Below, in pieces: positions 1 to 62,217 of a stretch of DNA of 64,000 nucleotides. The position numbers and the translations under genes are program-made. Numbering within the stretch: the first letter of the stretch is position 1; the number at the start of each line of letters is the position of its first letter. The notes beneath the pieces were generated by a model that was not told where the DNA came from, did not search any database, and worked only from the letters and a program-made list of their open reading frames with translations. The stretch covers positions 124,001 through 188,000 of the IMG/VR virus record IMGVR_UViG_3300028569_002417; one strand, 5' to 3'.

Positions 1-558
1 AACTTCCCTGATATGGTCCAGCTTTGGAGTCGCTGCAAGATTGATCTGGCGTAGTGCTTCACTGTTACCAACGCCAACCCTTCCAGTCGCCTGAAGATCT
101 TGCTGCGCTTGTCGATCTAGACGAAGCTTCCAATAGCTTTCCTGAGCATTATCAATTTCTTCTCGTGTATATTTCTTGGGAAAACTTTGATAAATCTTAT
201 AAAGAGCATCCAATTCTCTTAAAGCGCCTAGCACGGCATAATCTTGTTCTTGAAGGTCAATTCTTTTCAAGTCTGCATCAATCTGATCAATTTCAGTTCC
301 CTTGTCTTCAAGTTCTTTAATTTGAATTTCGATCCTTCTTTTTCCTAGTTTCGCTCTTTTCAAATTAGCAACTTTTATTTGTATCTCAAGGACACACTGG
401 CTAAATTGCATTTCAATTGTATCGTGCTGACCAACTACAAATTTTTCAATTACATATGATGTTCTTGGCTGTTGGATCTCAAGAAATGATTGTTCCAATT
501 CCTCAATAGCTTTTACTGCTTCATTTACTCTTTCATCAATCGTAGTCAATTCGTTCAT
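1..558 (-). CDS. hypothetical coiled-coil protein, partial (runs off window start)
   Basis: Manual translation from ATG 558: MNELTTIDERVNEAVKAIEELEQSFLEIQQPRTSYVIEKFVVGQHDTIEMQFSQCVLE...RQINLAATPKLDHIREV; frame open at both ends read; SD-like GAGG upstream. Absent from the ORF track because it has no stop in the window. Confidence 0.8.
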   Translation of the reverse strand, partial: MNELTTIDERVNEAVKAIEELEQSFLEIQQPRTSYVIEKFVVGQHDTIEMQFSQCVLEIQIKVANLKRAKLGKRRIEIQIKELEDKGTEIDQIDADLKRIDLQEQDYAVLGALRELDALYKIYQSFPKKYTREEIDNAQESYWKLRLDRQAQQDLQATGRVGVGNSEALRQINLAATPKLDHIREV

Positions 559-571
559 TTTTAAGCCTCAT

Positions 572-600
572 TTGAAAAAATAAATCTATTACATTATAAT
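572..600 (+). promoter_or_regulatory. sigma70-type promoter for the glycosyl/methyltransferase operon
   Basis: TTGAAA (572-577), 17 nt, TATAAT (595-600). Confidence 0.6.
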
Positions 601-638: not shown

Positions 639-1292
639 ATGCCGGGATCATGGGAACTTATCAATCAAAATCGTGTCCTATGTTGCATTTTAACGAGAGA
701 ATATGCACCAGTTGCATGGGCTTTCGGACTCAGAAACCTGCAAATTCCCGGTGCAGTCACAGCACTCCAAGGAATGCCATATGACCATGCACGAAATACA
801 GGATGCTTAAAACTACTCGAACTCGGCTGGGAATGGCTATTCTTTCTCGATGACGATGTCATTCCTCCTCCTGATGCAATCATAAAACTAATGTCTCACA
901 AGAAACCAATCGTAAGTGGCTTGTACTACAGAAGATACGAACCACTTGCCCCTGTAATGTTGAGAGAATCAGAAAATGGTCCTCAATGGATTCAAGAATT
1001 TAATGCTCCTGACCTTCTGGAAGTCGATTATGTAGGAGCAGGATGCCTTCTCATACATCGTGATGTTATCAAACAATTACCTCCACTCAGCAATCGTTGC
1101 CAATGGTTTGAATGGCGATGCGATAGAACTGATCTTCCTCATCTTGAAAAAACAAGCGAAGACTTTACTTTCTGCAAACATGCCAGAAATCATGGATTCA
1201 AAATTTATGTTGATACCAGTGTGCAATGCCGACATGCAGGATTGGGACAAAGTGAAATTGGCGGATTCAAACCATTGGAGATCAGAGCCTGA
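639..1292 (+). CDS. GT-A fold glycosyltransferase (GT2-like)
   Basis: LFFLDDDV DxD motif, VGAGCLLIHRDV, SEDFTFC, IYVDTSVQCRH. Confidence 0.8.
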   Translation: MPGSWELINQNRVLCCILTREYAPVAWAFGLRNLQIPGAVTALQGMPYDHARNTGCLKLLELGWEWLFFLDDDVIPPPDAIIKLMSHKKPIVSGLYYRRYEPLAPVMLRESENGPQWIQEFNAPDLLEVDYVGAGCLLIHRDVIKQLPPLSNRCQWFEWRCDRTDLPHLEKTSEDFTFCKHARNHGFKIYVDTSVQCRHAGLGQSEIGGFKPLEIRA

Positions 1293-2350
1293 TGAAACTT
1301 ACATACTTGCCAACAACTCCAATGAAAAAGTTAAAAATCTGTGTCATATCCAGCACAGTCCTACATTGCCCCCCAAAGGGCTATTCTGGACTAGAAATGC
1401 TGGCTTGGCAAATAGCTGAAGGGCTTACAGCCAAAGGTCATGAAGTAATGCTTGTTGCACCAAGAGGATCAACAAGTAGTTGTGAAATTCATGAAACAAC
1501 ACAATATGAACCAGAAGGACAAGCCTACAGCGGTTATTGGCACAAACTACCAAGCTTTGATGTGATCATCGATCATAGTTGGGAAAAATGGAGCTACATC
1601 CTGAAAATGGAAGGTAAGCTTCCACAACCAATCCTTGGCGTTCTACACGCTCCTGTAGACACTATGTACAGCACAGCACCATCAGTCCCATTCCCATGCT
1701 TTGTTTGCATCAGCAAAGACCAATCAGATGGTTGCTCCGCACACCTGAAAGTCGCTTCCCGTGTCGCTTATAACGGAGTTGATGTTAATTTTTATAAAAA
1801 CACAGGATTAACAAGAAACGACCGTTATCTCTTCCTCGCCAGAATAAGCACAATCAAGGGTCCACATATTGCTGTTGATGTGGCCAATACTTGTAAAATT
1901 GGACTTGATCTCGTAGGAGATGACAGAATCACAGGAGAACCAGAACTTCTCAACAGTATTAAATCTAAATGCTCTGTATCGCCCAATCTTAGGTATGTAG
2001 GGCATCAAAACCGTGATGAGTGCAGTGTATGGTTTAATACAAATAAAGCCCTCCTACACCCCAACAAACACTTCCGTGAGCCATTCGGACTTGCACCAGT
2101 CGAAGCTCAACTATGTGGAATGCCTGTTATTGCATGGAATCATGGTGCCTGCAAAGAAACAATCAAGCATGGCGAGACAGGATTCCTTGTCAATAGTCAA
2201 GAAGAAATGGAAAAACTTATCAAAGACGATGCTGTTTCAACAATTAAATCAGAAAACTGCATTGAATGGGCAAATCAGTTTTCTTATGACAACATGATTA
2301 AAAGATATGAAGATCTTTGTTTTGAAGCAATAGACACAGGTGGCTGGTGA
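1292..2350 (+). CDS. GT4 (GT-B) glycosyltransferase
   Basis: PPKGYSGLE N-terminus; EPFGLAPVEAQLCGMPVIA (EX7E motif). Confidence 0.9.
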   Translation: MKLTYLPTTPMKKLKICVISSTVLHCPPKGYSGLEMLAWQIAEGLTAKGHEVMLVAPRGSTSSCEIHETTQYEPEGQAYSGYWHKLPSFDVIIDHSWEKWSYILKMEGKLPQPILGVLHAPVDTMYSTAPSVPFPCFVCISKDQSDGCSAHLKVASRVAYNGVDVNFYKNTGLTRNDRYLFLARISTIKGPHIAVDVANTCKIGLDLVGDDRITGEPELLNSIKSKCSVSPNLRYVGHQNRDECSVWFNTNKALLHPNKHFREPFGLAPVEAQLCGMPVIAWNHGACKETIKHGETGFLVNSQEEMEKLIKDDAVSTIKSENCIEWANQFSYDNMIKRYEDLCFEAIDTGGW

Positions 2351-3051
2351 AAATACATATTTCTTATACTTATGGCTGTCCTGATGAAACAATTCTTCGT
2401 GAATTGATGAGCTATGACATTCAATGCCCAGAATGCACAATTTTAGAGCCACATGAAAATGCTCCACTAAACTTTGAGGTTCCAACTAGCTTTACAAGTT
2501 TGCACTGGAGCAGACAATACGAATATCCTTGGGCAATTATGCATAGTAATTTGAAGCCAAGCGATGTTTGTCTTGATGCTGGTGGAGCATATGCTGTTTT
2601 CAAGTATGCAGTTGCCAAAAGATGCGCCAAAGTAGTCACGATTGATATGAATCAAGACTATCTTGACAAATCTATAAGGTCAGCAAAAAGACTTGGTTTC
2701 AAAAACATTGAGTTTTATAATTCTAAAATTCAAGATTATAGAAGTGAAGAAAAATTTGATAAAGTCTATTGTATATCTGTTCTAGAACACATACAGAGTA
2801 GTAGTGAAAGAATTGAATGTATTGAAAACATGATAGGAATGCTAAAGAAGGATGGAGAGCTTTATTTAACTTTCGATTTTATCATAGAAGAAGGTGAAAA
2901 TCAGTTTGATTTTTACATGGGAAAAAATGAAGCAGCAGAAATATTAAATTATTTTGGCGTATCTGAATTTAATGATGAAAAATATTATTCTGCGAGTTTC
3001 CCCGGTGGTTGCGTTCTTGCAACAATATGTTTGAAAGTGTGGGAAATATGA
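2347..3051 (+). CDS. class I SAM-dependent methyltransferase
   Basis: CLDAGG motif I, VVTID, FDKVYCISVLEHI, LKKDGELYLTFD. Confidence 0.85.
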   Translation: MKIHISYTYGCPDETILRELMSYDIQCPECTILEPHENAPLNFEVPTSFTSLHWSRQYEYPWAIMHSNLKPSDVCLDAGGAYAVFKYAVAKRCAKVVTIDMNQDYLDKSIRSAKRLGFKNIEFYNSKIQDYRSEEKFDKVYCISVLEHIQSSSERIECIENMIGMLKKDGELYLTFDFIIEEGENQFDFYMGKNEAAEILNYFGVSEFNDEKYYSASFPGGCVLATICLKVWEI

Positions 3052-3707
3052 GGATACCTGACCATATTATTCAAGAATATAAAACCTTTGATCCAGAATC
3101 AAGATTATTTTTTGCTGATTTTGATGAGCCACAAGGTTCAAAAATACTTGAAGTTGGATCTCAACATAGTCCTATAGCCAGCATGATGGCTAAGTGTGGA
3201 TTTCATGTTACAGGTGTTGATTTAAGAGATTCTGATCAAGAATTAAACTATAATCACATTACTGCTGATTTCTGCCGATTACCATCTTACTTCCTTCGTG
3301 AAAACATAGGAACTTTTGATGCTGCTGTTATTGTCTCTGCCATTGAACATTTTGGTTTGAATACTTATGGAGAAGGCAAGATACATGAATATTATGATGT
3401 TATTGCCATGCGATATATTTATGATTTATTGAAACCGGGAGGAACATGTTATTTGACAACACCTTTCGGTGGTAAATTTGTTGTACACAAGCCTCATTGG
3501 CGTGTTTATGATTGGGCTAATCTACTTGAACGAATTGTTCAAGACTTTAGAACAGAAGTGTTTAATCTTGGTGTTTGTGAAGAAATAACAATCAACGGTA
3601 AGGTTTTTCCTGTTGGAAGCCCAATATCAATGAACGAGGCTATACTGAATACAATTGGATTACCTCATGTTTCTTGCTATGTAAGATTAAGAAAACCATT
3701 GGATTAA
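3048..3707 (+). CDS. class I SAM-dependent methyltransferase (DUF268-like)
   Basis: ILEVGS, VTGVDL, SAIEHFGLNTYG, LLKPGG; start moved to ATG 3048 (ATGA overlap with upstream stop). Confidence 0.85.
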   Translation: MRIPDHIIQEYKTFDPESRLFFADFDEPQGSKILEVGSQHSPIASMMAKCGFHVTGVDLRDSDQELNYNHITADFCRLPSYFLRENIGTFDAAVIVSAIEHFGLNTYGEGKIHEYYDVIAMRYIYDLLKPGGTCYLTTPFGGKFVVHKPHWRVYDWANLLERIVQDFRTEVFNLGVCEEITINGKVFPVGSPISMNEAILNTIGLPHVSCYVRLRKPLD

Positions 3708-3710
3708 ATC

Positions 3711-4718
3711 ATGTTTTTATTTGTAACAAATGATAAAATCGGTTCAGAAACAGGAGGCGGTCAAGTAACCGCACATGAATTTGAAGCGTTAAATCAACTT
3801 GGTCCTGTTGATGTCATCAATCCCGCACCAACCAATAATCCTTTTGATTCAGAAAAGTCTATTCAAGAAATTGATTTCAGTAAGTATAAGCTTGCACACT
3901 TCTATGCTGGCACATTCCCAGAACTAACCACCAAATTAAAAGCAAATGGCGTAAAAATAACTTACACTGTTGCTGCTCATGATGTTGACATCAGCAGAGA
4001 AGAATTTTTAGGATTAGGTGCTTCCTTTGATTTTCCACACTTAAATGATCCAAATTTATTTCAAAAATATATAAGCTGCTACAAGAATGCTGATGTTGTA
4101 ATATGTCCATCAATGGTTGCAGAAAAAACCAATAATAAATATGGAATAAACAATACAAAAATAATTCCACATGGTCATGTTCCCGTCAGGAACAAGAAGA
4201 TTCCAAATAAGTTTGCAGTTGGGTATCTTGGTCAGTGTGGACCTGATAAAGGATTGAGATATTTGTTAGAAGCTTGGTCTATTCTAAATTACAAAGATGC
4301 CATATTGAATCTTGCAGGAATTCAAACTCCCAGATTGTTGCCTTTAATTAGACATTTTGGAAAAGGCAATATCAATATTCAAGGCTGGGTTAAATCGACA
4401 GAAGATTTTTACAATAGTTGTTCTGTTTATGTTCAGCCAAGCGCAACAGAAGGATTTGGCATTGAAGTTCTTGAGGCTATGAGTTCTGGCAGACCTGTTG
4501 TTGTTTCTGATGGTGCTGGAGCATCCGATTGCATTGAAGGTTGCGGTTTTGTATTTGAGAAAAAGAATGCTAAGCAGCTTGCACAAATGATCGACACATT
4601 GAAAAACAATCAAAATCTTTGTGAAGAGTTTGGCAAAAATGCGGAAACAAAAGCGAAAAATTACACTTGGGACAAGGTCAAAGAACAATACATCCAATTG
4701 TGGCGGGGCATGATATGA
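3711..4718 (+). CDS. GT4 glycosyltransferase
   Basis: DKGLRYLLEAW; EGFGIEVLEAMSSGRPVVVS. Confidence 0.9.
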   Translation: MFLFVTNDKIGSETGGGQVTAHEFEALNQLGPVDVINPAPTNNPFDSEKSIQEIDFSKYKLAHFYAGTFPELTTKLKANGVKITYTVAAHDVDISREEFLGLGASFDFPHLNDPNLFQKYISCYKNADVVICPSMVAEKTNNKYGINNTKIIPHGHVPVRNKKIPNKFAVGYLGQCGPDKGLRYLLEAWSILNYKDAILNLAGIQTPRLLPLIRHFGKGNINIQGWVKSTEDFYNSCSVYVQPSATEGFGIEVLEAMSSGRPVVVSDGAGASDCIEGCGFVFEKKNAKQLAQMIDTLKNNQNLCEEFGKNAETKAKNYTWDKVKEQYIQLWRGMI

Positions 4719-6289
4719 GTTATTCATTTCCATTTAGTCAAAATGATAAAGTAATTGAATTGGGAGGAGGAGATAGACCATATTTCCGCCCAAATCTCGA
4801 TGTTCGTTCAGGAACAAGCATTGACATAGTTGCTGATTTTAATGAACCATTGCCAATACCAGAAAATGAATACAATGGTGTATTCAGTCAATTTTGCATT
4901 GAACATCTTTCTTGGCGTAAAGTAAAACTATTCATCAGTGAAGTTTATCGTATTCTCAAGAACAATGGTAAAGTTGTTTTTATTACAGCTAATACCGAAA
5001 AGCAAATGCAATATGTTCTTGATCACGATGAGTGGAACGACAACTGTTCTTGTATTATTTTCGGTGACCAAGATTATCCAGAAAACACTCATCGCAATAG
5101 CTTCAGTCCAAAATATGCAATTAAGTTAATGACTGATGCTGGATTCACCAATGTTATTGTATTGCCTTTTGGGGAATTACAAACAGATATGATTATTGAA
5201 GCAACCAAAAAAACCAATAAAATTGATTTTGATAGAGAGTATTTTGATAATCCTCATTTTTATGGTGAGAATACTGGATTCTATCGTGATCATCCAAGCA
5301 ATTGGATTGTTTTCAATAACATCATGAAGAAGAATCCAACTTCTGTTTTGGAAATTGGTTGTGGTAGAGGATATTTGCTTAAAAGACTTGAAGTAAATGG
5401 TGTTCCATCCAGAGGATTAGAAATATCCAAGCATTGTTTTCTAACAAGAGTGAGTGATTCTGTTGCTGAATTTGATGTGAGGCAAACACCTTGGCTATTT
5501 GAAGACAATCAATTTGATTTGTGTGTGTCACATGGTTTTTTTGATTTTATTGAAGCTGAATATATTCCTGTTATTCTTAAAGAAATAAATCGTGTTTGTT
5601 CAAGAGGAATGCATGGAGTAAACACAAATAGTCTAAATCTTTCTTGGAGCAATCAGGAATTTATCGACAACAAGCATTTAACAGAAGGATCTCTTGCTCT
5701 GAATATACCTGCTGGAGATGGTAGGCTTAAACTCAATATTGGTAGCTTCACGGTGATGTTACATAATGGCTGGATCAACACAGACATTGTAAATCTGAAT
5801 GATTATGCTGCTCAAAATCAATACAAATTCCTTCAGATGGATTGTAGGCATCCGCTTCCATTTGAAAAAAGTACTGTTGATTTAATTGTTTCCAGTCACA
5901 TGTTAGAGCATCTTGATTGGAATGAAGGATTGAATTTTCTTAAAGAGTGTAATCGCATTATGAAACCAAATGCGACCATAAGGATCGCTGTTCCAGATGC
6001 AGAAAAATTAGTTAGTTATTATAAGGATAACAATCTTGAATTTTTAGATCAGATGAATGTTACTGCTGCTCAAAATAAAGCGCAATCATTCAAGTTATGG
6101 TCATTCTTATTTGATGGTCACAAGATTGCATATGATTTTAGTAGTTTAGAGCAGATTGGAATGGAAGCTGGATTCCGTGTTGAGAGAAGGAATTTTAATG
6201 AAGGTAATTTACAGATAATCAGGGAGACGATGGATTATCTCCCTGAAATTAGCATATATGTTGAAATGACTAAGAATTCCAATGTCTGA
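4715..6289 (+). CDS. protein with three tandem class I methyltransferase domains
   Basis: VIELGGG...IEHL...LKNNG; VLEIGCGRG...FEDNQFDL; KLNIGS...SHMLEHL...MKPNATIRIAVPD. Start ATG 4715 overlaps upstream stop. Confidence 0.85.
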   Translation: MSYSFPFSQNDKVIELGGGDRPYFRPNLDVRSGTSIDIVADFNEPLPIPENEYNGVFSQFCIEHLSWRKVKLFISEVYRILKNNGKVVFITANTEKQMQYVLDHDEWNDNCSCIIFGDQDYPENTHRNSFSPKYAIKLMTDAGFTNVIVLPFGELQTDMIIEATKKTNKIDFDREYFDNPHFYGENTGFYRDHPSNWIVFNNIMKKNPTSVLEIGCGRGYLLKRLEVNGVPSRGLEISKHCFLTRVSDSVAEFDVRQTPWLFEDNQFDLCVSHGFFDFIEAEYIPVILKEINRVCSRGMHGVNTNSLNLSWSNQEFIDNKHLTEGSLALNIPAGDGRLKLNIGSFTVMLHNGWINTDIVNLNDYAAQNQYKFLQMDCRHPLPFEKSTVDLIVSSHMLEHLDWNEGLNFLKECNRIMKPNATIRIAVPDAEKLVSYYKDNNLEFLDQMNVTAAQNKAQSFKLWSFLFDGHKIAYDFSSLEQIGMEAGFRVERRNFNEGNLQIIRETMDYLPEISIYVEMTKNSNV

Positions 6290-6437
6290 TGCAATTTGCC
6301 ATGACGAAACCACATGTGATAATGTTTATTATCCAAAAGAATGTGCGAATGATGGCTCCTATGTGACATTCAATGTCATCATACATTAAGTCGTCACCCA
6401 TGGCTTTACGCCAAATTGACCAGAATTTTTTCAACAT
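6270..6437 (-). CDS. small membrane protein (55 aa), resembles a small hypothetical protein common in T4-like phages
   Basis: Manual translation MLKKFWSIWRKAMGDDLMYDDIECHIGAIIRTFFWIINIITCGFVMANCIRHWNS; TAATG coupling to upstream stop; family match is from memory. Confidence 0.7.
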   Translation of the reverse strand: MLKKFWSIWRKAMGDDLMYDDIECHIGAIIRTFFWIINIITCGFVMANCIRHWNS

Positions 6438-6751
6438 TAGTCAAGAACACCTTGAGTTTTTCCAATATTACCAAGAACATCAACTGCATTCCATACGGCG
6501 TTGTAGACAGTTTCGTCTGTAGCGGTGTAAGAAAAAAGATCTCTCATGTGAAGTCTTCTTCTTTCTGTTGGATGAAAGTTTGGTTTTCCATTTTCATCTA
6601 GGTAGCATAATCTGTAGTCAACAACCAGAATTGGTTCTGGGCTAGAGGTGAGTGTTGCATCAAGAGTAAGGTTTTCGACCCACCAAACATTATAGATTTT
6701 TTCAATTGTTGCAGGCTCTATGATTGGATTTTCTTTTGTGATTAAGGCCAT
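6437..6751 (-). CDS. hypothetical protein
   Basis: 104 aa; SD AGGAG upstream. Confidence 0.75.
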   Translation of the reverse strand: MALITKENPIIEPATIEKIYNVWWVENLTLDATLTSSPEPILVVDYRLCYLDENGKPNFHPTERRRLHMRDLFSYTATDETVYNAVWNAVDVLGNIGKTQGVLD

Positions 6752-6766
6752 TTTTTCTCCTATACG

Positions 6767-6916
6767 TTATTTAATAAATTCACTTGTTTCGACGCATTCT
6801 TTTTGAGCTTGATTATATCCATTATAGTAACCTATTAGATAACCACACGATAAATAAATCATACTTAAAATTAAAAGCATGATGAAATAAGGTATTTTTT
6901 TCAAGAATGACATCAT
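6767..6916 (-). CDS. small membrane protein (49 aa)
   Basis: Manual translation MMSFLKKIPYFIMLLILSMIYLSCGYLIGYYNGYNQAQKECVETSEFIK; one hydrophobic segment; fills the gap in the minus-strand operon. Confidence 0.6.
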   Translation of the reverse strand: MMSFLKKIPYFIMLLILSMIYLSCGYLIGYYNGYNQAQKECVETSEFIK

Positions 6917-6923
6917 GACCTAT

Positions 6924-7610
6924 TTAGAGGATTTTGCCACAAATTCTTTGATCTTCAGCGGATTTATTTCTCTTTATCACTGATTCACTATTCTTTTTGT
7001 CATATGCAAAAATGCCATTTTGAATTTGAGTGAATATATCTGACCTCATATAAACATCTACGCTTTTGTTTATTCCTGTTACGATAACGCTTGATAAAAG
7101 CCTTCTTGCGATGAAGGGATCAATACTATAAGCGTGTGCTCTGCACAAACAGCGTAGTCCTTGCCATTGCATCATGATTGGAACAGGATTACAGATGAAA
7201 TTATTTTCAACTTGCTCATGGCTTCCTAAGTATATGATTGCGTTTATTGCTGAGTGTTGTGTGATTTTTTGTAAAAGTATTGCATCATGTTCAAGAATAA
7301 CAATTGGCTTATCTTGTTCGGCACACTCTGCCCAAAGGCTTATGTGTGTTAAAAAAATTGAAATTTCTGTTTTATCTAAGGTTGGATTTGAGCATTTGAT
7401 CCACTTCAGCCAATCTTTTCTTTTCAAGTGTTCTGGTTCTTTTATTTCATCGCCTGTGCCATCAAAAGCTGGCCACATTTTGTAAGACATTCCTACATCT
7501 TCACATGATTTGGCGCATTCATTTGCGTACTGACATGATTTTTCATTGTCGGGCAAATAGATGATATAAGCTGAATCAACTCCAATTTCATATTTGTAAT
7601 GTAAATTCAC
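6924..7610 (-). CDS. GT25-like glycosyltransferase
   Basis: AFDG, EISIFLTHISLW, IVILEHDA, AHAYSI. Confidence 0.8.
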   Translation of the reverse strand: MNLHYKYEIGVDSAYIIYLPDNEKSCQYANECAKSCEDVGMSYKMWPAFDGTGDEIKEPEHLKRKDWLKWIKCSNPTLDKTEISIFLTHISLWAECAEQDKPIVILEHDAILLQKITQHSAINAIIYLGSHEQVENNFICNPVPIMMQWQGLRCLCRAHAYSIDPFIARRLLSSVIVTGINKSVDVYMRSDIFTQIQNGIFAYDKKNSESVIKRNKSAEDQRICGKIL

Positions 7611-8287
7611 TTTTCTTTTCCTTTCTCTGGAATTGTTGATTCACTGGGAACATCCATGGCATATATCCCGAAACACAACATTGAAAAACGATTTAGACTT
7701 ATTGTTACATCAGCAGAAGAAAATATTCCTTTTTCCAATATATGGCTAACTAAATTTTTTGCCATAAAAGGATCAATGCTATAAGCATGTGTTCTGAGTA
7801 TGTGTCTATAATCTGGATTAAGTTGTGCATGAGGAGGAATGATACTCCAAAAATTATTTCTTACTTGTTCATTACATCCCAAATAAATGATCGCATTTAC
7901 TGCTTGATGTTCTGTAAAAGGCTGAAGCATCACAGCGTCATGTTCTAATACAATTAAAGGTCTGTTTTGTTCTATGCACTTGCACCACAAAGAGAAATGA
8001 CTTAACAAGCAGCATACTTCTGGCTTTGTCAATTCGTGATTTACAAGACGAAGCCATTTAAGCCATGTGGCTTCTTGGCAATGTTCTGGGACTTTGATAC
8101 CTTCAACATGAGGGTCAGTTCCATCAAAAGCATCGTAGATTTCGGCTTTTTGACCTACTCTTTTGCAAGATTCAAGGCATCGAGATGCTAATCTCTCTGA
8201 TAATTCATGACCACGAATGGTGATGATATATGCTTTTCCCACTGCTAAATCATATTTTGGATGAAGGGTTTCATTTAATATTTGCAT
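7607..8287 (-). CDS. GT25-like glycosyltransferase (paralog of 6924-7610)
   Basis: AFDG, EVCCLLSHFSLW, LIVLEHDA, THAYSI. Confidence 0.8.
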   Translation of the reverse strand: MQILNETLHPKYDLAVGKAYIITIRGHELSERLASRCLESCKRVGQKAEIYDAFDGTDPHVEGIKVPEHCQEATWLKWLRLVNHELTKPEVCCLLSHFSLWCKCIEQNRPLIVLEHDAVMLQPFTEHQAVNAIIYLGCNEQVRNNFWSIIPPHAQLNPDYRHILRTHAYSIDPFMAKNLVSHILEKGIFSSADVTISLNRFSMLCFGIYAMDVPSESTIPEKGKEK

Positions 8288-9078
8288 TAGTACACCAGAT
8301 TAAATTGATTATAATGTTCAGTCAAATATGGCCCAAGTATCTCATCAGGAGGAGTGCTTGTCTTCTTCAAAATTGTTCTAATCAAATGTAAATTTTCTAA
8401 TCCCCAAGCAGCATCTTTTTCTTCAGCGCAAAAATTATGAATGTTTTCATAAAGATGACCCAAATGATGAGGCAATCCTAAAAAGTCATAAATTTCTTTC
8501 AACACAATATCAGGTTTGTTTACCAAGTTTTCATATTCAACAATATGCAAATTATCTCTATAATTTTTCAAACCAAACTTCATGCTTTCATATGGAGATA
8601 TGATGTATTCTTCCCACAAACATTTAGCACGATTGCCAATGTTAATTGGTATTTTTTTTGATTTCAAATGATTGTCAATAAAGTTATCAGATTGTTTGTT
8701 TTTTTCAATTAATTTAATATAAGAAGCAATTATTTCTGAAACTGGACGAACAGTGCAAATTATTTTAGGTTCATCTGTTACAAATCTTTTCAAAGGAATC
8801 AAATTTCGTGGATGACCACGATGTTTATCTAAAATGTATTTCTTGTCTATATGCTTGTAAAAGCTTTCGATAATACCTTTATAAACATTGGCAGAAACCA
8901 CATCTTTATCATAAGTGTATTTTTGGTCCAACAAGTTGAAATTTTGGTTGGTGAAACAAAGTAAATCTAAAAGAGGACTAGTTGGAGTGACATGAAAATC
9001 TGGGTTTTGACCTATGATCGAACCTAAAAGTGTAGATCCAGATCTTGGAAGACCAGACAAGAAAAATATCGTTTTCAA
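8287..9078 (-). CDS. PAPS-dependent sulfotransferase
   Basis: GLPRSGSTLL 5'-PSB loop, ILDKHR, VRPVSEIIASY 3'-PB, VEYENLV. Confidence 0.85.
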   Translation of the reverse strand: MKTIFFLSGLPRSGSTLLGSIIGQNPDFHVTPTSPLLDLLCFTNQNFNLLDQKYTYDKDVVSANVYKGIIESFYKHIDKKYILDKHRGHPRNLIPLKRFVTDEPKIICTVRPVSEIIASYIKLIEKNKQSDNFIDNHLKSKKIPINIGNRAKCLWEEYIISPYESMKFGLKNYRDNLHIVEYENLVNKPDIVLKEIYDFLGLPHHLGHLYENIHNFCAEEKDAAWGLENLHLIRTILKKTSTPPDEILGPYLTEHYNQFNLVY

Positions 9079-10475
9079 TTCAAATCCCCTAACAAATCTT
9101 TAAGCTTTGCCATGGGTTCATCCCAATTTCTTGGTTTTATTTGCCTTAGCAGTGTTACATTTTCACCATACCAAGGGGTTTTCTCTGTTGAGTGACACCA
9201 AGTGTAGTATGCTGAAATTGGAATGAAAATATAAACCTTTTTGCCTTGTGATGCAGCCATATGAGCAATACTTGTGCATGATGTAATGACAATGTCAAGA
9301 TTACTGATTAGGGCAAAAGTATCTTCAATTGTTTCTAGCTTATCATTATAATCAACAATATTAGGGAAATCAACAGTTTCTTCTACTCCATCATCTCTTT
9401 GCAGACTAATGAAATGAGCATCAATATGACCAATATTTGAATAAAGCTGAGAGACAGGATAGGATCGATGTAGATCTTGTTCGTAATTCTTACTTCCCTT
9501 CCAACGAATACCGATTTTCGGCTTATCTGTTTCAATTTTCCATTTGTTCTGGAATTCTGGACAAGGTTTTAGATATGGTTCTTTCCATAAATCTGCATAT
9601 CCAAGATTCAAATAAATTGGTAATTGCATTGAATATGTCCACATGACATCAGGCATATGCAATGCTTCTTCCAAATCTTGAATGACAGGATAACCATTTT
9701 TTACAAAAAGGTCAGTTATTCCTTGTCTATCATTTTTTTTATTTTTCTGTGTAGCTTCATACCAATAGGCATTAATGCCACGTTCTTTCAAATGATTCAT
9801 AAATCGAATATTGATGATCTCATCGCCGATTCCTGCTTCGGCATAAACAACAAGGTTTTTTACATCTGGAGAACCTTGCCAAAATGGCAGATTCAAAGCA
9901 TTATTTTTTGCAAATATTGTTTGTGTATTCCAAAGTTTCATCTTGGCTCCACCCAAGAGAAATTGTCTCATTCCTTTTTGGAATTTATCTTCATAAAGAT
10001 AATATGTCCCCAAGTTGAATTCAATCTTATCACGAATTTCTTCAGGAATATCATCGCTCAACAATGCTTTTTCAAGTATTTTTTGAGCTTCAGGTTTTCT
10101 GTTTAGCAAATAAAGAGCATAAGACTTATGAAGTTCGATTTCACCAGATGATCCTGCTCCTTCATTGAAGCCAATGTATATCATTGCCTCTTCTGGCATA
10201 TTGGCGCTGTTGTAAACATTTATAAGATTGCTTCTTGTTACAAATACATGTTGTGCTGTTGGAGCAACAATTAAAGATGCCTTACCATGCTTTATTGATT
10301 TCTTATATTCTTTTATCTTAAAATAACATTTAGATAAATTATCATGTTGACCAAATAGTGAAGCTGATTCGGCAAAAGCATCAAGACATTGAACTGCAAG
10401 GTCTTTATGCCCAATTTTTTCAAGAGCAATTATAAATGGCTCTAGATCGCTTATGCCTTGTGGTTCTTGGCTCAT
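9075..10475 (-). CDS. TPR repeat protein with C-terminal GT9-like glycosyltransferase
   Basis: Helical TPR-like N-terminus; AEAGIGDEI, IGIRWKGS, FISLQ, NLDIVITSCTSIAHMAA. Confidence 0.8.
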   Translation of the reverse strand: MSQEPQGISDLEPFIIALEKIGHKDLAVQCLDAFAESASLFGQHDNLSKCYFKIKEYKKSIKHGKASLIVAPTAQHVFVTRSNLINVYNSANMPEEAMIYIGFNEGAGSSGEIELHKSYALYLLNRKPEAQKILEKALLSDDIPEEIRDKIEFNLGTYYLYEDKFQKGMRQFLLGGAKMKLWNTQTIFAKNNALNLPFWQGSPDVKNLVVYAEAGIGDEIINIRFMNHLKERGINAYWYEATQKNKKNDRQGITDLFVKNGYPVIQDLEEALHMPDVMWTYSMQLPIYLNLGYADLWKEPYLKPCPEFQNKWKIETDKPKIGIRWKGSKNYEQDLHRSYPVSQLYSNIGHIDAHFISLQRDDGVEETVDFPNIVDYNDKLETIEDTFALISNLDIVITSCTSIAHMAASQGKKVYIFIPISAYYTWCHSTEKTPWYGENVTLLRQIKPRNWDEPMAKLKDLLGDLN

Positions 10476-10777
10476 AGGTTCCTGATATATTGTTCGACTT
10501 TGTAGAAGTCTCCTACAATTCTACTGATACGGGAGTCTTTATCTTTTTCAACTAGTTCTTTTGATGGAACATTTTCACCCATATCTTGAATGAACTTCTC
10601 CAATCCAACTAAGTAAGACCAAAACCAATATTTTCTATTCCTAAGCCTTTTTTGAACATCCTTAACATATGTCTTCCAAGGAATTTTCCATTTTTTGAAA
10701 ATAACTACATATCTTTCCATCATCATGCGATTCTGTTCATCATAAAATTCAGGTTCAAAATCAGGACTGTCAAGCAT
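10472..10777 (-). CDS. hypothetical protein
   Basis: 101 aa; ATGA overlap with downstream gene. Confidence 0.7.
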   Translation of the reverse strand: MLDSPDFEPEFYDEQNRMMMERYVVIFKKWKIPWKTYVKDVQKRLRNRKYWFWSYLVGLEKFIQDMGENVPSKELVEKDKDSRISRIVGDFYKVEQYIRNL

Positions 10778-10836
10778 AAAATCCTTATTGATAAATTTAA
10801 CCCATTGCTATCTCGACACCGATATGATTTTCAATT

Positions 10837-11520
10837 CTAGACTTGCCATTTTTTTTTGTAAACACCCTTCATGTCATGAGTCATCTCATTTAATCTGTCG
10901 CCCATAAGTCTATGTGAGGCACTAAACTCATGATAAACATGGCTACCATTTACAAGAAAATGTTTTATATTCAACTTTTTCAAGGAATTAGCATAATCGT
11001 TGTCTTGATACCAGAATAAAAAATTCTCATCTAAAATTTTATTTTCACATAACATTTTTCTTTCAGCACAAATACACCAACCAACTAAATATTTTTCTAC
11101 TTCATATCCTTCCAAAAATTGTGATTTATATTCATCTGGAGTTAGTATTACCTTATGACGATTTGGCTCAAGAGGAGAAGCACTCTTCATATTATGAAGA
11201 ATCATGGTCTGAAGAAGAATCTCTGCTGAATTAGGACCAAATATCAAATCATTATTGCACATTAAGACAAAATCAGACTCGCAATATTGTAAACCTATGT
11301 TAAGGAATTTATTGTAATTAAAATCCTCACAAGGATGAATAACTTTACATCCATTATAGAAAAAAGAATCATTGTCTGAAGAACTGTTTGTTTCAACAAT
11401 TATTACATTTAACGACAAATTAGTATTGTTGCGAAACAAAGATGAGACACATCTTTGTGTAAGACCATAAAAAGACAAGTCTTTCGTGTAAGAAAGAATT
11501 ATAACATCTAATTTTTGCAT
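10837..11520 (-). CDS. GT2 glycosyltransferase
   Basis: VIILSY, FNYNKFLNIG, CNNDL, WYQDND. Confidence 0.85.
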   Translation of the reverse strand: MQKLDVIILSYTKDLSFYGLTQRCVSSLFRNNTNLSLNVIIVETNSSSDNDSFFYNGCKVIHPCEDFNYNKFLNIGLQYCESDFVLMCNNDLIFGPNSAEILLQTMILHNMKSASPLEPNRHKVILTPDEYKSQFLEGYEVEKYLVGWCICAERKMLCENKILDENFLFWYQDNDYANSLKKLNIKHFLVNGSHVYHEFSASHRLMGDRLNEMTHDMKGVYKKKWQV

Positions 11521-11523: not shown

Positions 11524-12975
11524 TCAACCACCTAATTCCAACTCCTTAATTTCAACATTATGGCCTTCTTTCTTCAAAATATCAATTCTTTTGTTGCTAT
11601 GATCTTCCAGATAATCATTAATTTCAAAAACAAAGTCAAAATAATTCAATCTTTCTTTGTCATCTGCCGTTCTTAGTCCACGACCCATACGCTGAATAAT
11701 CATGTGATCAGCCTGACCACCAGCAGCGTTAATTAAATTGTTTGGATGGACGTTGATTCCAGTATTGAAAATTTGCTGAGTCGCAATTGCAATTAAATCG
11801 CCTTTAGCCTTCTGCAATTCTTTAATTACCGACTTTCTGGTAACGGCATTATCCTTGCCTTGAACCCAAAGACTATTGGGAAGAAGCTTATTTAGAGCAT
11901 CTCCATGGGCAATCCTATCAACTAGAATAAGAGTTCTTCCTCTTAGACTCTTAGCAAGACGAGTCACGACATCATGAAAATGAAAGCTTTCGGCAATTCC
12001 ACGAGTTACTGCATCGATATAAATATCATGTGGAATTTTTGGTTCACGGATTGGATAAAATATACACTTGCTCTTTGCCAAAATTCCACGGTCTTGCAAT
12101 TCAGAAGTAGTTAGAACTCCACCTTCTGCTGACTTAATCTTCAATATTGGCCCAAAGAAACCACGAACATAAAATTTTTGAACTTGATCTTTGCCACCAA
12201 ATTTGAAAGGTGTAGCACTTACTGCAACACGAATATCAGCAGACTTGAGACGACGATAAACAGCTTTTGGTAAAGCACTCATCATATCATGAATTTCATC
12301 GACAATAAGAACTTTTATTTTGGGTAATACTTTTTCCATTTTGGCAATAGATTGAACAGTTGCGACTGTGATCATACTGGGATTAACACTTCCTCCCCAT
12401 AATGAACCAACATTCGGCAATCCCCATTTAACAAACTCATCATAATTTTGCTGAGCCAAACTAGCTCTGTTCTGTAAAACCAATGTAGGTGTATTAGGAG
12501 CAATAGTTTTAAGGATACCGAGCATTACCAATGATTTTCCAGCAGAAGTAGGAGCATAAATCACACCTCTTCTGTGCTTAACAACTTGATTTATCATTTC
12601 AACTTGATAATCATAAAGTTCAAGAGACTTGATCTTGTCGCCAATACTGTTCGTTTCTGGAAGCCATTGATTAAGAAAAAGTTTGTCAACTTCTTGATAG
12701 GCGAAAAGGCTCTTAGTTCTTAAGTCTTCAACTGTATATTCTGTCTTGAAATGATTCAAAACAGCACTGACTTCAGGAAGCAAGCCAGTCAAAAATTTAC
12801 CTGTTTCTAATGCGAAAAAATTGATGAAGCCATCCCATTTCTTCATCTTATAAGCACGGTTGTGAAAATAATTTTTATCACGAAAACGCAATCTGTCCCA
12901 TAACTCTGTTCTAATTTTCATATCATCAGACAAGAAAAAAGAATAATCATTGTTGATTCGGAGGATGTTGGTCAT
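11524..12975 (-). CDS. uvsW: UvsW-like SF2 DNA helicase
   Basis: LYDYQ, APTSAGKS, VDEIH, SATP, QRMGRGLR; size and layout typical of T4 UvsW. Confidence 0.85.
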   Translation of the reverse strand: MTNILRINNDYSFFLSDDMKIRTELWDRLRFRDKNYFHNRAYKMKKWDGFINFFALETGKFLTGLLPEVSAVLNHFKTEYTVEDLRTKSLFAYQEVDKLFLNQWLPETNSIGDKIKSLELYDYQVEMINQVVKHRRGVIYAPTSAGKSLVMLGILKTIAPNTPTLVLQNRASLAQQNYDEFVKWGLPNVGSLWGGSVNPSMITVATVQSIAKMEKVLPKIKVLIVDEIHDMMSALPKAVYRRLKSADIRVAVSATPFKFGGKDQVQKFYVRGFFGPILKIKSAEGGVLTTSELQDRGILAKSKCIFYPIREPKIPHDIYIDAVTRGIAESFHFHDVVTRLAKSLRGRTLILVDRIAHGDALNKLLPNSLWVQGKDNAVTRKSVIKELQKAKGDLIAIATQQIFNTGINVHPNNLINAAGGQADHMIIQRMGRGLRTADDKERLNYFDFVFEINDYLEDHSNKRIDILKKEGHNVEIKELELGG

Positions 12976-13056: not shown

Positions 13057-13686
13057 TCACCTTTTTTCTTCCGCAACACATTCTTTATTTATCAACTTGT
13101 GTCTCAATAATTTAACCACTACTAAAGCATCTTCGATTGCTGTATGAGCAACTTCTCCTGCGATGCCTGCTCTTTCCATACACTTTTTCATGTCAGGAAG
13201 AGAATCATCATTTTCCAAATCAAAATACAATATAGCAGGATCTATAGAACGATTTAGAAAATAAATGCTTCCCCAATCCTTAATTTTTGATTTAAGGAAA
13301 GGAATGTCGAAAGAAGATAAATTCTTACCTGCTGGATTTATATAAATATTGCCATTTTTATCATTTTGATTATAACCATTTTTGAGAAAAAAGGCGGTAA
13401 GAGCAGTTGGTAAATGGTCTATCGCTATAAAATGAATGTCTTGATTTGGACAATATTCCATATTTTTCTTTTTAGCCATATCAATTTTTTTGAATATTTC
13501 CGAATGCATGCTTAAGGCAAATGGATTGCCCTTGTAGTTGTCCTGCATAAATATAGCTTGGAATCGAGGAAGTTCTTCAAGTGGCTTTGGGTTTTTCAAA
13601 TCATCTAAAACAACAGCAAACTGTAATATATCGCTGTTTTCCTGAGAAAGACCTGTTGTTTCAATGTCAATGCTAGCAAATTTCAT
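13057..13686 (-). CDS. DEDDh 3'-5' exonuclease (DnaQ/oligoribonuclease-like)
   Basis: IDIETTGL (ExoI), GKNLSSFD (ExoII), HTAIEDA (ExoIII). Confidence 0.85.
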   Translation of the reverse strand: MKFASIDIETTGLSQENSDILQFAVVLDDLKNPKPLEELPRFQAIFMQDNYKGNPFALSMHSEIFKKIDMAKKKNMEYCPNQDIHFIAIDHLPTALTAFFLKNGYNQNDKNGNIYINPAGKNLSSFDIPFLKSKIKDWGSIYFLNRSIDPAILYFDLENDDSLPDMKKCMERAGIAGEVAHTAIEDALVVVKLLRHKLINKECVAEEKR

Positions 13687-13772: not shown

Positions 13773-13784
13773 AAGTGCTAAATA
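13773..13784 (+). promoter_or_regulatory. candidate late promoter AAGTGCTAAATA
   Basis: Identical 12-mer at 20882-20893 (minus); TAAATA core like the T4 late promoter; followed by AAGGAG. Confidence 0.55.
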
Positions 13785-14347: not shown

Positions 14348-17300
14348 TTAGCCTTCTCTCCATCTACTCCAGAATGTATTATTCCTAACCATTTCTTCGT
14401 AGGTATGGGTTGCAAATCTCTTATGTGCAGCGCCAGCCCTTATTCCAGAAAGTCTTACTACGACTTCAATTTCATTGTCGATAATCTTATCACTTTCCAC
14501 ATCAATGATAATAAGATTGTCTCTCACATAAGCTCCGACACTAACTGGCATAGATGGAACAACACTTACAGGTTTTATTGTGTTAAAGGCACAAACTTGT
14601 AACAACCGATCATCAATAAATTTTGAAACATTTTCTGTTTTATGTCCTAATCCACCAACCTTGAATATGACGATATCCTCAAATCTAACTTCTGGCATTT
14701 CTACACAGATAAGTTCAACATATTCAGTTCCTTGTGAAGTAACAACAGGAAGAATCGCATACTTATCACCTTGTGGACCTTGAGGGCCTTGAGATCCTTG
14801 TAATCCATCTGCCCCAGCAGAACCTTGGAATCCTGCTCCTTGAGATCCTTGAGCTCCAGTTGGACCTGTAGGTCCAGTAGCGCCATTTGATCCTGCGGGT
14901 CCCGTAAATCCTATATCCCCTTGATATCCTTTTGTTCCACTTGGAACAAAAATTATGCTCAAAGATTCTTCGTTAAAAGGTGTTATTCCAGAAAGAGGTT
15001 GGACAACAATTTCATAAAAAACTCCATGATCTATTAAATAACCATTAACCGCCATTGTACAAATAGTTGATCCTGCGTTGTTGCCATTGATATAAATCAA
15101 ACCTGTAAAATTAGATCCATCATATAGATCATCAAAATAACTAATCCATAAACTTTGGTCAATACTATTAGCGTCAAATGCAGAAATATAAATTCTAGTA
15201 ACAGAACCTATCGAAAAATCGTTAAAACGAATTTTTCCACTACCGGGAGGAGTAGTTGGCGCATTAGTTACATCAGGATTAAATATATACTTTACACCAC
15301 CTTTATCTCCAATTCCTTGATTTCCTTGTAACCCTTGAAATCCGTCTGCTGGTCCTTGAAGACCTTGATTTCCTTGATTTCCTTGATATCCAAATCCTTG
15401 CAATCCTTGAAAACCTTGAAGACCTTGAAGACCTTGAAGACCTTGAAGACCTTGAAATCCTTGAAATCCTTGATGTCCTTGATTTCCTTGATTTCCTTGG
15501 TAACCTTGATTTCCTTGTTCTCCTTGAAATCCATCTGCTGGTCCTTGAAGTCCTTGATTTCCTTGATTTCCTTGGTAACCTAGACCTTGATAACCTTGAT
15601 TTCCTTGATAACCTTGATAACCTTGATAGCCTTGATTTCCTTGGAATCCGTCTGCTGGCCCTTGGAACCCTTGTCTTCCTTGATTACCTTGGAATCCTTG
15701 GAATCCTTGGAACCCTTGATTGCCTTGATTACCTTGATTTCCTTGGAATCCTGCACCTTGATTTCCTTGATTTCCTTGATTTCCTTGCTCTCCAACATCT
15801 CCTTGATAGCCTTGTTCTCCTATTCCTTGCCATCCTTGATGACCCTGTTCTCCCTGATGACCTTGTGGTCCTAATTCTCCTTGACTTCCTTGAACTCCTG
15901 TAGGTCCAGTATTGCCAGTATCTCCTTGGACTCCCTTAAATCCTTGTTCTCCTACACGTCCTTGACTTCCTTGATGTCCTTGTTCTCCTTGAGGCCCAAT
16001 CTCTCCTTGACGGCCTTGATGGCCTTGATAACCTTGATATCCACGATCTCCTTGATAACCTGCTCCTTGTCTTCCTTGATATCCTTGTTGACCTTGATAT
16101 CCTTGAAATCCTCTTGTTCCTTGAATTGGTCCTACGTTTTCCCATTGCGATCCGTCCCATATAATTCCATCTCCAACTTGTGCTGGGCTGGTATCTGCCC
16201 TAATTGGGGCAGGTACTGGACCAGATCCACAATCAGCATTTGCAGTATCAATCAAAATATACATGTCGCCAAAGCTTGGCGCTAAAATAACACAATTAAT
16301 ATATTGCCATGATTCAGAACCTCTTATTGCTATAGAAGGTCCAATTTCACCTTGATTTCCTTGATTTCCTTGATAACCAATATCTCCTTGATTTCCTTGA
16401 TAACCTTGTTCTCCTTGATATCCAGAACCTTGATATCCTTGATAACCTTGGTTTCCCTGATTTCCTTGATATCCTTGTTCTCCCTGATATCCCTGATCTC
16501 CTTTAGATCCTACTACTCCTTGATGTCCTTGTCTTCCTTGAAGTCCTATTGGCCCTGTATCTCCTAATTCACCTTGTGGTCCTTGTAAACCCGTTCTTCC
16601 TGTTGGTCCTTGTAGACCATCTCTCCCTTGTTGTCCAACACCTCTTTCTCCTTGACGACCCTGAGAACCCTGAGGTCCAGTATCGCCAATATCTCCTTGA
16701 CTTCCTTGACTTCCAATATCTCCTTGGCTTCCTTGGCTTCCAATATTTCCTTGATTTCCTTGATAACCAATATCCCCTTGATTTCCTTGGAATCCTTGAT
16801 TACCTTGTTCTCCCTGATTTCCTTGATTTCCTTGATAGCCAATATCTCCTTGATTTCCTTGGAATCCTTGATCTCCTTGATTCCCCTGATTACCTTGTTC
16901 TCCCTGATTTCCTTGATTTCCCTGATAACCATATCCTTGATATCCTTGATTACCTTGAGATCCTTGATCTCCTTGATCTCCTTGAGCGCCAATAACTCCT
17001 TGGGAACCTTGAGATCCTTGATTGCCTTGATAACCACGTTCTCCTTGATTTCCTTTTTCTCCTTGAGCACCAATTTCTCCTTGGCGACCTTGACGACCTT
17101 GATTTCCTTGTAATCCTATATCGCCCTTTTCTCCTTGAACTCCAATTTCTCCTTGGCGACCTTGACGGCCTTGATTTCCTTGATATCCTTCGCCTTTTTC
17201 TCCTTGTGATCCTTGCGCTCCTGTCAGTCCAAGATCACCTTGATTTCCTTGCAGGCCAATAATGCCTTGCAATCCTTGATATCCTGCTCCTTGTGTTCCT

Positions 17301-20509: not shown

Positions 20510-20519
20510 TTTAGCCTTG

Positions 20520-20861
20520 TTATTTGAAACTACTTGCAAATGATACGTTGAACTGTTTGTTTGTTCCGCCTATAGAATCTTGCTTTGCATTTTGACATTT
20601 TCGATAAGCCTTTAGATAAGGAATTGGATATGAAACAAATGCTCCATCACTTCTATTGGCTACGCAAATCTCAATATTTTTATAAGGAGGACACGAAAAA
20701 TAAGACTCTGGCTTGAGACAACAATCAACCAAGCCTGCTGGAATTTGACAAAAATTAGTATTTATGTTTGCCATATTGTTTACTTGAGTTAAATCCTGAC
20801 CTTTTTCAATTTGTTTAAGAGCAACATCTGGTACTAAAGCACCTTTCAAATAAGTATCCAC
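20520..20861 (-). CDS. Cys-containing hypothetical protein heading the fibre operon
   Basis: GTG 20861 follows SD AAGGAGG; CTAAATA motif upstream. Confidence 0.65.
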   Translation of the reverse strand: MDTYLKGALVPDVALKQIEKGQDLTQVNNMANINTNFCQIPAGLVDCCLKPESYFSCPPYKNIEICVANRSDGAFVSYPIPYLKAYRKCQNAKQDSIGGTNKQFNVSFASSFK

Positions 20862-42019: not shown

Positions 42020-42031
42020 ATTTAAGGTGTT

Positions 42032-42499: not shown

Positions 42500-42565
42500 T
42501 TCGCATGGTGAATATATACCTCGTAGCGTCACTCTTGGCGCTTTCCTTTAACGAGGTGTCCAAAC

Positions 42566-43188: not shown

Positions 43189-43212
43189 ACTCGTGTCTCT
43201 GTGAGGATTAAA

Positions 43213-43709: not shown

Positions 43710-43731
43710 CAAAAAAAATCAAGAGGTCTTC

Positions 43732-62201: not shown

Positions 62202-62217
62202 TAAAATAACTAATATT

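Follow-up and report, generated by a model that had tools for sequence, protein, structure and literature searches.

A glycan-tailoring gene cluster was analysed at positions 639-11520 of a 64,000-nucleotide stretch of viral DNA (the window), which comprises bases 124001-188000 of the 225,527-bp IMG/VR viral contig IMGVR_UViG_3300028569_002417; coordinates refer to the window unless prefixed G000, which marks positions on the full contig. As judged from gene content, the cluster holds a core composed of a tetratricopeptide-repeat (TPR) glycosyltransferase, a sulfotransferase, two GT25 glycosyltransferases and one methyltransferase, which is linked to ADP-heptose genes and recurs in many aquatic phages. 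The core may serve the cytoplasmic glycosylation of protein, probably of virion fibres, with an oligosaccharide that begins with heptose and bears methyl and sulfate groups, a reading that is favoured tentatively and held at somewhat below an even chance. The evidence consists of domain identities, predicted folds, a conserved neighbourhood and a promoter class. Gene identities were assigned by Pfam, PHROG and NCBIfam scans of the window proteins, in which 7 glycosyltransferase-type proteins, 5 methyltransferase domains and 1 sulfotransferase using 3'-phosphoadenosine 5'-phosphosulfate (PAPS) were counted in two convergent gene strings, the same inventory and layout already given in a first-pass annotation of this DNA. 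The conserved core module, the link to ADP-heptose genes and two further paralogs of the TPR glycosyltransferase (TPR-GT) were not part of that annotation.

The TPR glycosyltransferase and its conserved neighbours

The TPR-GT is encoded on the minus strand at 9075-10475. An AlphaFold model built from 29 homologs (mean pLDDT 88.7) showed a TPR solenoid (approximately residues 12-190) joined to a two-Rossmann GT-B domain (approximately residues 205-466); the TPR domain was confirmed by profile comparison with the PDB, and the protein is soluble, with no hydrophobic segment. Among Swiss-Prot models the top match by far was Caulobacter FlbA (FlmG), covered over both domains (TM 0.72, E 8e-17, 19% identity), followed by the TPR-bearing OGT and SPY/SPINDLY enzymes (GT41) and then by GT9 heptosyltransferases of lipopolysaccharide (LPS) synthesis; the glycosyltransferase domain taken separately matched the folds of 3tov, 1psw and RfaQ/WaaF at TM 0.4-0.5. 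FlmG (596 residues) is a soluble cytoplasmic flagellin O-glycosyltransferase whose acceptor is bound via the TPR domain (PMC7591256). The earlier label of TPR-GT9 was upheld by the model as to the TPR domain and the GT-B fold, but the GT9 part of it appears, from the profiles, to be a remote likeness and not family membership: Pfam GT9 (PF01075) was matched below its gathering score (E 0.18, 11.5 bits, residues 383-414), while being the only glycosyltransferase family to recur among the Pfam hits of the homologs (16 of 29 at E ≤ 1, best 6.7e-6).

More than 780 metagenome homologs of the TPR-GT were found, nearly all on viral contigs, and a scan of genome contigs for cellular relatives returned solely a phage contig mis-binned in an Acidimicrobiaceae metagenome-assembled genome (MAG), which gave no host clue; by these searches the family appears essentially viral. 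Two further full-length paralogs are encoded at G000 47358-48923 and 98479-99909, making three in the genome, and between paralogs the TPR halves are less alike (18-28% identical) than the glycosyltransferase halves (28-39%).

Seventy-nine viral loci around TPR-GT homologs were fetched, and open reading frames (ORFs) were clustered in the 38 loci at 32-64% identity to the query. A methyltransferase of ~188 residues lies immediately upstream of the TPR-GT in 34 of the 38, and the other recurrent neighbours are a P-loop kinase weakly resembling adenylyl-sulfate kinase (33 loci), RCC1-repeat proteins (29), a sulfotransferase (22), DUF4376 (20), GT25 (15), HldE-like proteins (10), HldD-like proteins (10) and a GT4-methyltransferase-GT2 fusion (7). 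No homolog of the P-loop kinase was found in the present contig, where contig-wide negatives cover about half of the phage genome. The conserved methyltransferase does not stand beside the TPR-GT in this phage; its homolog is the third methyltransferase domain (approximately residues 353-480) of the protein encoded at 4667-6289 in the left string, a homology which links the two convergent strings as parts of a single pathway.

The same order of TPR-GT, sulfotransferase, GT25 and GT25 was found in a 229-kb ENA contig (L027), and contig L110 (CAYVOK010000005.1) carries, in order, a fibre gene, HldD, a methyltransferase, two TPR-GT genes, a sulfotransferase and two GT25 genes. The cultured phage S-SRM01 (Kyanoviridae), which infects Synechococcus sp. 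KCZYC6, has a TPR-GT (34% identity), a 2-oxoglutarate (2OG)-Fe(II) oxygenase, an RCC1 protein and a sulfotransferase (51% identity) beside a tail-fibre gene, and its module further holds a GT2-methyltransferase fusion and a sugar-nucleotide dehydratase/epimerase. Since the module is shared by unrelated phage lineages, it appears to move between them as a unit. Contig L027 also carries, at its positions 8642-9859 and immediately before the TPR-GT, an IS605 OrfB / Cas12f-like TnpB gene, a possible vehicle for module transfer. L110 is a 135-kb, 34%-GC contig that was deposited in an 'Acidimicrobiaceae' MAG and appears to be of phage origin, placed by binning with a bacterium.

The sulfotransferase gene (8287-9078, minus strand) matched Pfam Sulfotransfer_3 at 64.1 bits against a cut-off of 27. 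Its PRSGST loop is conserved, and the PAPS-binding residues P11, R12, K105, R111 and S119 are invariant in 22 homologs and aligned to the motifs of the tyrosylprotein sulfotransferases (TPST). The model (pLDDT 90.9) has a sulfotransferase fold, with NoeE as its best full-length structural match (TM 0.60) and tyrosine sulfotransferases, CurM and heparan 3-O-sulfotransferases next. NoeE sulfates methylated fucose on Nod factors. A sugar is tentatively favoured as the acceptor here. The adjoining GT25 genes (paralog a, 6924-7610; paralog b, 7607-8287; both minus strand) scored 52.7 and 39.3 bits against Pfam PF01755 (cut-off 24), and an E-H-D motif, invariant in the pair and their relatives, is aligned to the E-D-D acidic metal-binding motif of the solved bacterial GT25 8xc8.

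Genes that could supply a heptose donor are present in the same genome. The plus-strand gene at 52357-53748 encodes an HldE-like fusion of a PfkB kinase and a nucleotidyltransferase, a bifunctional heptose-7-phosphate kinase / heptose-1-phosphate adenylyltransferase by its best NCBIfam match (NF008454, 8e-82), the next two matches being the separate rfaE domain models; judged by sequence, donor supply is its probable role. An HldD-like ADP-glyceromanno-heptose 6-epimerase (TIGR02197, 9e-60, far ahead of GalE) is encoded at G000 43891-44814, 2.5 kb from one of the TPR-GT paralogs. A phiEco32-like COOH-NH2 ligase, a carboxylesterase and a primase-polymerase (G000 41469-43766) adjoin this epimerase and paralog. 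Adenosine 5'-phosphosulfate kinase was not found in the contig, so PAPS would be supplied by the host.

Fibre setting, expression signals and the proposed acceptor

The cluster is embedded in a fibre region of ~45 kb. On its left (G000 102410-122426) are four giant fibre-like proteins of 726-1982 residues that match tail-fibre/virion PHROGs, two of them built of nine-residue Ser-Gly repeats (SGxIxSGQIG..., ~17% Ser) within a 36-residue super-repeat. Ser-rich beta-helix repeats are modified by the autotransporter heptosyltransferases, and the Ser-Gly giants are reminiscent of them. On its right, the nearness to collagen-like fibre genes pointed out in the first-pass annotation held: two collagen-like (G-X-Q) tail-fibre proteins, both candidate acceptors, are encoded on the minus strand at 14348-18094 and 18119-20539, match many tail-fibre PHROGs and share nearly identical N-termini of 50 residues and related C-terminal globular domains. 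The second of them also has a long run of G-H-Q / G-N-Q triplets, a histidine-rich collagen. A 2OG-FeII_Oxy_5 oxygenase and a thioredoxin-fold protein (G000 122423-123471) lie between the fibre giants and the cluster. Glycosyltransferases thus positioned beside structural genes, as in virion glycosylation systems, are found likewise in S-SRM01 and L110, and hypervariable fibre regions with glycosyltransferases have been described in cyano- and pelagimyophages (PMC7029224).

In the mechanism proposed here, the module would work in the cytoplasm of the infected cell. The TPR domain would hold a protein acceptor while the GT9-like GT-B domain starts the chain on it, probably with a heptose whose ADP-activated donor the phage HldE-like and HldD-like enzymes help to make. 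The two GT25 enzymes, members of a family that extends heptose in lipo-oligosaccharide cores, would then lengthen the chain; the left-string GT4 and GT-A enzymes together with the GT2 enzyme would elongate or branch it; and the five methyltransferase domains and the PAPS-dependent sulfotransferase would cap it, drawing on host S-adenosylmethionine (SAM) and PAPS. Virion fibre proteins would be the most likely acceptors because the cluster lies inside the fibre region. Of three functions offered without ranking in the first-pass annotation, protein or fibre glycosylation is now favoured because the TPR-GT is FlmG-like, the enzymes are soluble, the setting is a fibre region and one TPR-GT paralog lies behind a late-type motif; host-surface remodelling stands as a serious rival and DNA hypermodification is poorly supported.

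The motif in question, CTAAATA, shows an eight-fold enrichment ahead of genes: of its 46 sites, 15 fall no more than 80 nt before a start, many at a distance of only 4 nt. It precedes a fibre-like gene, a 179-residue gene at 13805 (motif at 13778-13784) and the TPR-GT paralog that heads the fibre region. It is a candidate late promoter distinct from the TATAAATA of T4. The left string itself is preceded by a sigma70-type promoter, as had been noted at first pass. In the 80-bp intergenic gap at 559-638, a divergent promoter region (572-620) contains TTGAAA-17-TATAAT at 572-600 (plus strand) before the left string and TTGACA-16-TATAAT, a perfect match, at 620-593 (minus strand) before a gene of 389 residues. 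The overall number of promoter-like sites in the contig is at chance level; of the 14 sites with at least 11 of 12 matches, nine fall in the 6.3% of the contig that is intergenic, and all nine are correctly oriented with a gene within 150 nt, ThyX and a helicase being among the targets. Near-consensus sigma70-type promoters are therefore taken to be a real class in this phage, the left string included. This class would be early or middle and the CTAAATA class late, both assignments being inferred from the motifs.

In one metatranscriptome run, short pieces (150-365 nt, 90-100% identical) were spread across both strings. Because one piece spans the divergent promoter gap, carry-over of DNA is possible, and these pieces are not counted as proof of expression.

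Several points weigh against fibre glycosylation. The reading is drawn from genes, and function is inferred from them. Both strings look early or middle and not late, the left by its sigma70-type promoter and the right by its co-orientation with a helicase and an exonuclease. The HldE-like match (275 bits against a cut-off of 521), the HldD-like match (202 against 274.6) and the GT9 match all fall below curated cut-offs, and neither GmhA (SIS_2, SIS) nor a GmhB-type phosphatase was found in the contig, so the heptose pathway is incomplete here or reliant on the host. By profile, the sulfotransferase stands nearest, among solved structures, to protein-tyrosine sulfotransferases (E 3e-13), with CurM and carbohydrate enzymes behind, so that sulfation of a glycan is itself a tentative reading. 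GT9, GT25, GT4, HldE and HldD are soluble or peripheral enzymes of LPS-core synthesis, so the missing membrane segments are compatible with a lipid acceptor. The adjacent fibre type, finally, varies by phage, with RCC1 proteins in most, collagen-like proteins in few and Ser-Gly-repeat fibres in two; adjacency may therefore only mirror a shared hypervariable region and does not by itself identify the acceptor. A single conserved neighbouring acceptor was rejected on the same grounds: Ser-Gly fibres accompany the module only in loci L045 and L110, and of 70 loci no more than 3 have collagen-like genes there.

Remodelling of the host envelope is the strongest rival and is possible, if doubtful. 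The enzymes would add heptose, hexoses, methyl groups and sulfate to the LPS core, lipo-oligosaccharide or another surface glycan at the inner face of the membrane, with the effect that superinfection is blocked or progeny are kept from re-adsorbing to lysed cells. GT9-like, GT25, GT4, HldE and HldD proteins form the standard LPS-core toolkit, LPS-core transferases are likewise without membrane segments, the sigma70-type early or middle promoter class fits host takeover, and such islands are interpreted in this way in the literature on cyano- and pelagimyophages (PMC7029224, PMC12801897). A protein acceptor is indicated instead by the TPR domain and by the likeness to FlmG over the entire protein. 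No polyprenyl-phosphate transferase, flippase, polymerase, ligase or GtrA/B/C Pfam family was found among the proteins of window positions 1-14 kb, to which the search was confined, the rest of the genome not having been searched for them. The module also stands among fibre genes in two unrelated phage lineages, and one TPR-GT paralog lies behind the late-type motif.

Fibre glycosylation may be put in a bolder form, which is unlikely as a whole: a self-contained and horizontally mobile protein-heptosylation system of large aquatic phages, in which the viral TPR-GT9-like family, supplied by the phage HldE and HldD enzymes, would start an LPS-core-like oligosaccharide on fibres with heptose, GT25 enzymes would add hexoses, and methyl and sulfate groups would follow, with each paralog serving a different fibre. 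Fibres would in that case be dressed in a negatively charged glycan resembling the bacterial surface.

Another acceptor, such as a host protein or small molecule modified during takeover, is rather improbable. TPR domains are able to bind any protein, and the expression signals look early or middle, as such a role would have it; the conserved company of several glycosyltransferases and sugar-nucleotide genes favours an oligosaccharide product instead. As a variant of this explanation, tyrosine sulfation would agree with the closest profile relatives of the sulfotransferase. It was marked down as a role for that enzyme, since no Glu of the phage profile aligns with the catalytic one of the tyrosine sulfotransferases (the TPST 'GEETR' stands opposite 'vtptsp') and NoeE, which matches the structure best over its full length, sulfates a glycan; tyrosine-sulfotransferase fold matches span only residues 2-206 of the phage protein.

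Glycosylation of the collagen-type would have the GT25 pair act on lysines of the collagen-like fibres after their hydroxylation by the nearby 2OG-Fe(II) oxygenase, as in mimivirus and animals, and is improbable. GT25 is the family of the animal collagen hydroxylysine galactosyltransferase, G-X-K-G sites are present in both collagen-like proteins, and the cluster has the 2OG-FeII_Oxy_5 gene 1.6 kb to its left, with a member of the same oxygenase family directly after the TPR-GT in S-SRM01. Look-alike phage proteins moreover have GT25 fused to a PLOD-type glycosyltransferase domain or to 2OG oxygenases, which echoes the hydroxylysine glycosylation of collagen in animals and mimivirus, where COLGALT1 and the mimivirus collagen enzymes provide precedent (PMC12003778, PMC9546862). 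The oxygenase, however, is outside the lysyl-hydroxylase family, the fibres are rich in G-X-Q and have few lysines, and just 3 of 70 diverged loci have a collagen-like gene no further than 8 kb from the module, GT25 being far commoner in company with the TPR-GT. The other five glycosyltransferases, the methyltransferases and the sulfotransferase would also be left without explanation.

DNA hypermodification, by which the transferases would decorate modified bases in phage DNA and evade restriction, is very improbable despite the co-orientation of the right string with a helicase and an exonuclease: a thymidylate-synthase-type hydroxymethylase (PF00303) was not found in the 225-kb contig (about half of the genome), in which ThyX is present, the TPR-GT is FlmG/OGT-like, seven glycosyltransferases and five methyltransferase domains go far beyond known DNA-glycosylation systems, and we know of no sulfated DNA modification. 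There is precedent for phage glycosyltransferases that assemble DNA modifications of several sugars, as cited in PMC12619734.

Gene content of the two strings and the source phage

The left string is on the plus strand and begins with a GT-A fold glycosyltransferase-like protein (639-1292; GT2/Anp1-like, DDD motif at residue 71), which matched phrog_1574 and phage glycosyltransferase PHROGs and whose phage look-alikes carry GT2/Anp1 matches; Anp1 itself was matched at 19.8 bits, below the Pfam cut-off. Of the two GT2 enzymes named in the first-pass annotation, that at 10837-11520 was confirmed by Pfam, but this one is GT-A/GT2-like and under Pfam thresholds. It is followed by a GT4 (GT-B) glycosyltransferase (1292-2350; Glycos_transf_1 69 bits, Glyco_transf_4 28.7 bits), a class I SAM methyltransferase with a weak NodS/UbiG likeness (2347-3051; Methyltransf_31/25/11, NCBIfam), a second class I SAM methyltransferase (3009-3707; Methyltransf_23, DUF268) that probably starts at the ATG at 3048, overlapping the upstream stop, a second GT4 (GT-B) glycosyltransferase (3711-4718; Glycos_transf_1 97 bits) and a 540-residue protein with three methyltransferase domains by Pfam (4667-6289), probably starting at the ATG at 4715. 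An ORF at 54-320 (plus strand) is probably spurious, because the 389-residue minus-strand gene covers window positions 1-558.

The right string, on the minus strand, probably starts further right than in the first-pass annotation, and it ends with three small ORFs. A helicase gene (ResIII/DEAD; 11524-12975) stands directly upstream of it and an RNase_T-type exonuclease gene (13057-13686) precedes that on the same strand; both are probably co-transcribed with the string, and the transcription unit would therefore begin near 13.7 kb. Then come the GT2 glycosyltransferase (10837-11520), a 101-residue protein with no family match (10472-10777), the stop of which overlaps the start of the TPR-GT, and the TPR-GT, sulfotransferase and GT25 genes. 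Several cluster genes share four-base stop/start overlaps typical of translational coupling. The GT2 gene is a strain-variable cassette, missing in eight relatives of ~95% identity; a metatranscriptome contig, from the run described above, joins 10765 directly to 11578, which is the form lacking the GT2 gene seen in those relatives.

The three small minus-strand ORFs (6270-6916) are kept solely in close relatives. They encode a product of 49 residues that opens with a hydrophobic, signal-like segment and then a Cys, as in lipoproteins (6767-6916), a protein of 104 residues with no family match (6437-6751) and, as the last gene of the string, a product of 55 residues with a hydrophobic C-terminal segment (6270-6437), which is 93% conserved in close relatives, above the overlapping plus-strand frame. 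From these sequence features the trio could be a membrane-acting set, related to exclusion or lysis. No membrane-spanning segment was found in the proteins of window positions 1-14 kb, where no 19-residue stretch had a Kyte-Doolittle mean above 1.45.

The contig is linear, with 36% GC and a CheckV completeness of 52%, and its source is a large uncultured lake phage outside the T4-like group. The cluster is present in nine other IMG/VR contigs at 92-100% protein identity and in lake-water metagenomes from at least 10 studies; no match to near-identical DNA was found in cultured phages. The recombinase is at best 29% identical to a known one, that of Microcystis phage Mel-JY01. At 60123-63826 the window encodes a PrkA-type serine kinase (AAA_PrkA and PrkA) and, after it, a DUF444 (YeaH-like) protein; the kinase shares 66% identity with its counterpart in the 595-kb uncultured phage LR756511, in which no TPR-GT was found, and 31% with 'serine kinases' of Thermus phages. 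An initial identification as a T4-like cyanophage was dropped because the recombinase is distant and the T4-type late promoter TATAAATA is not enriched in the contig (30 sites against ~50 expected, one of them upstream of a gene); psbA and tRNA genes are also absent from the contig.

Comparison with known systems

For twenty years, islands rich in glycosyltransferases have been recorded next to tail-fibre genes in large aquatic phages, and they are routinely called 'LPS genes' without a test. Here a conserved and testable core is singled out within such an island, and a cultured carrier, S-SRM01, is named. If the core glycosylates fibres, the product would be the first bacteriophage virion glycan known to be sulfated and the first known to be based on heptose, FlmG-type cytoplasmic protein glycosylation would extend to viruses, and the result would matter for host recognition by abundant lake phages and for their grazing and particle stickiness. 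If it remodels the host envelope, it would be a clear case of a lytic phage rewriting the LPS core. In both cases a mechanism would take the place of a default annotation.

Islands of glycosyltransferase, heptose and sugar-nucleotide genes by phage fibre genes are already described, usually under the label of LPS genes: those of P-SSM2, S-SCSM1, S-SCSM2R and S-SRM01 likewise hold glycosyltransferases, sugar-nucleotide enzymes (rfaE, epimerases) and methyltransferases (PMC7029224, PMC12801897, PMC7378029). The present phage differs from the cyano- and pelagimyophages in not being T4-like. The searchable literature yielded no description of a conserved core that combines an FlmG-like TPR-GT with a sulfotransferase, nor of its linkage to ADP-heptose genes or its occurrence in several lineages.

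A likeness to the tailoring of rhizobial Nod factors (NoeE, NodS, NodZ) is seen in the structural match of the sulfotransferase to NoeE, in weak NodS-like and NoeE-like NCBIfam hits and in a NodZ-like gene in the S-SRM01 island. These matches are far below family cut-offs and there is no chitin-oligomer synthase, so that the likeness is one of chemistry, the sulfation of a methylated sugar, and not of pathway.

To our knowledge, neither sulfation nor heptose has been reported in the virion glycosylation of mycobacteriophages, chloroviruses or mimivirus. In these systems the virus uses its own glycosyltransferases to decorate structural proteins in the cytoplasm, which for mycobacteriophages is taken from PMC12619734, where Freeman et al. 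(2023) is cited for it. The giant viruses among them, chloroviruses and mimivirus, also have methyltransferases of their own. The glycosyltransferase families of all these systems differ from those of the phage cluster.

The GT9 heptosyltransferases WaaC, WaaF and RfaQ show a remote likeness to the TPR-GT, in the GT-B fold, in the weak GT9 signature at residues 383-414 and in the linkage to genes resembling those of the ADP-heptose pathway; the phage protein differs in falling below the Pfam threshold and in being fused to a TPR domain. The autotransporter heptosyltransferases AAH and TibC, which offer an analogy, likewise have no TPR domain.

FlmG (FlbA) of Caulobacter crescentus is also among the closest known systems. 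The phage TPR-GT is shorter (466 against 596 residues) and belongs to a family that appears essentially viral, and the donor genes linked to it are HldE- and HldD-like, for ADP-heptose. FlmG acts on flagellin with a nonulosonic acid; the phage has no flagellin, and no pseudaminic-acid genes were noticed in it. The two proteins have in common solubility and the same arrangement of an N-terminal TPR domain and a C-terminal GT-B domain, and FlmG is the best structural match to the phage enzyme over its whole length.

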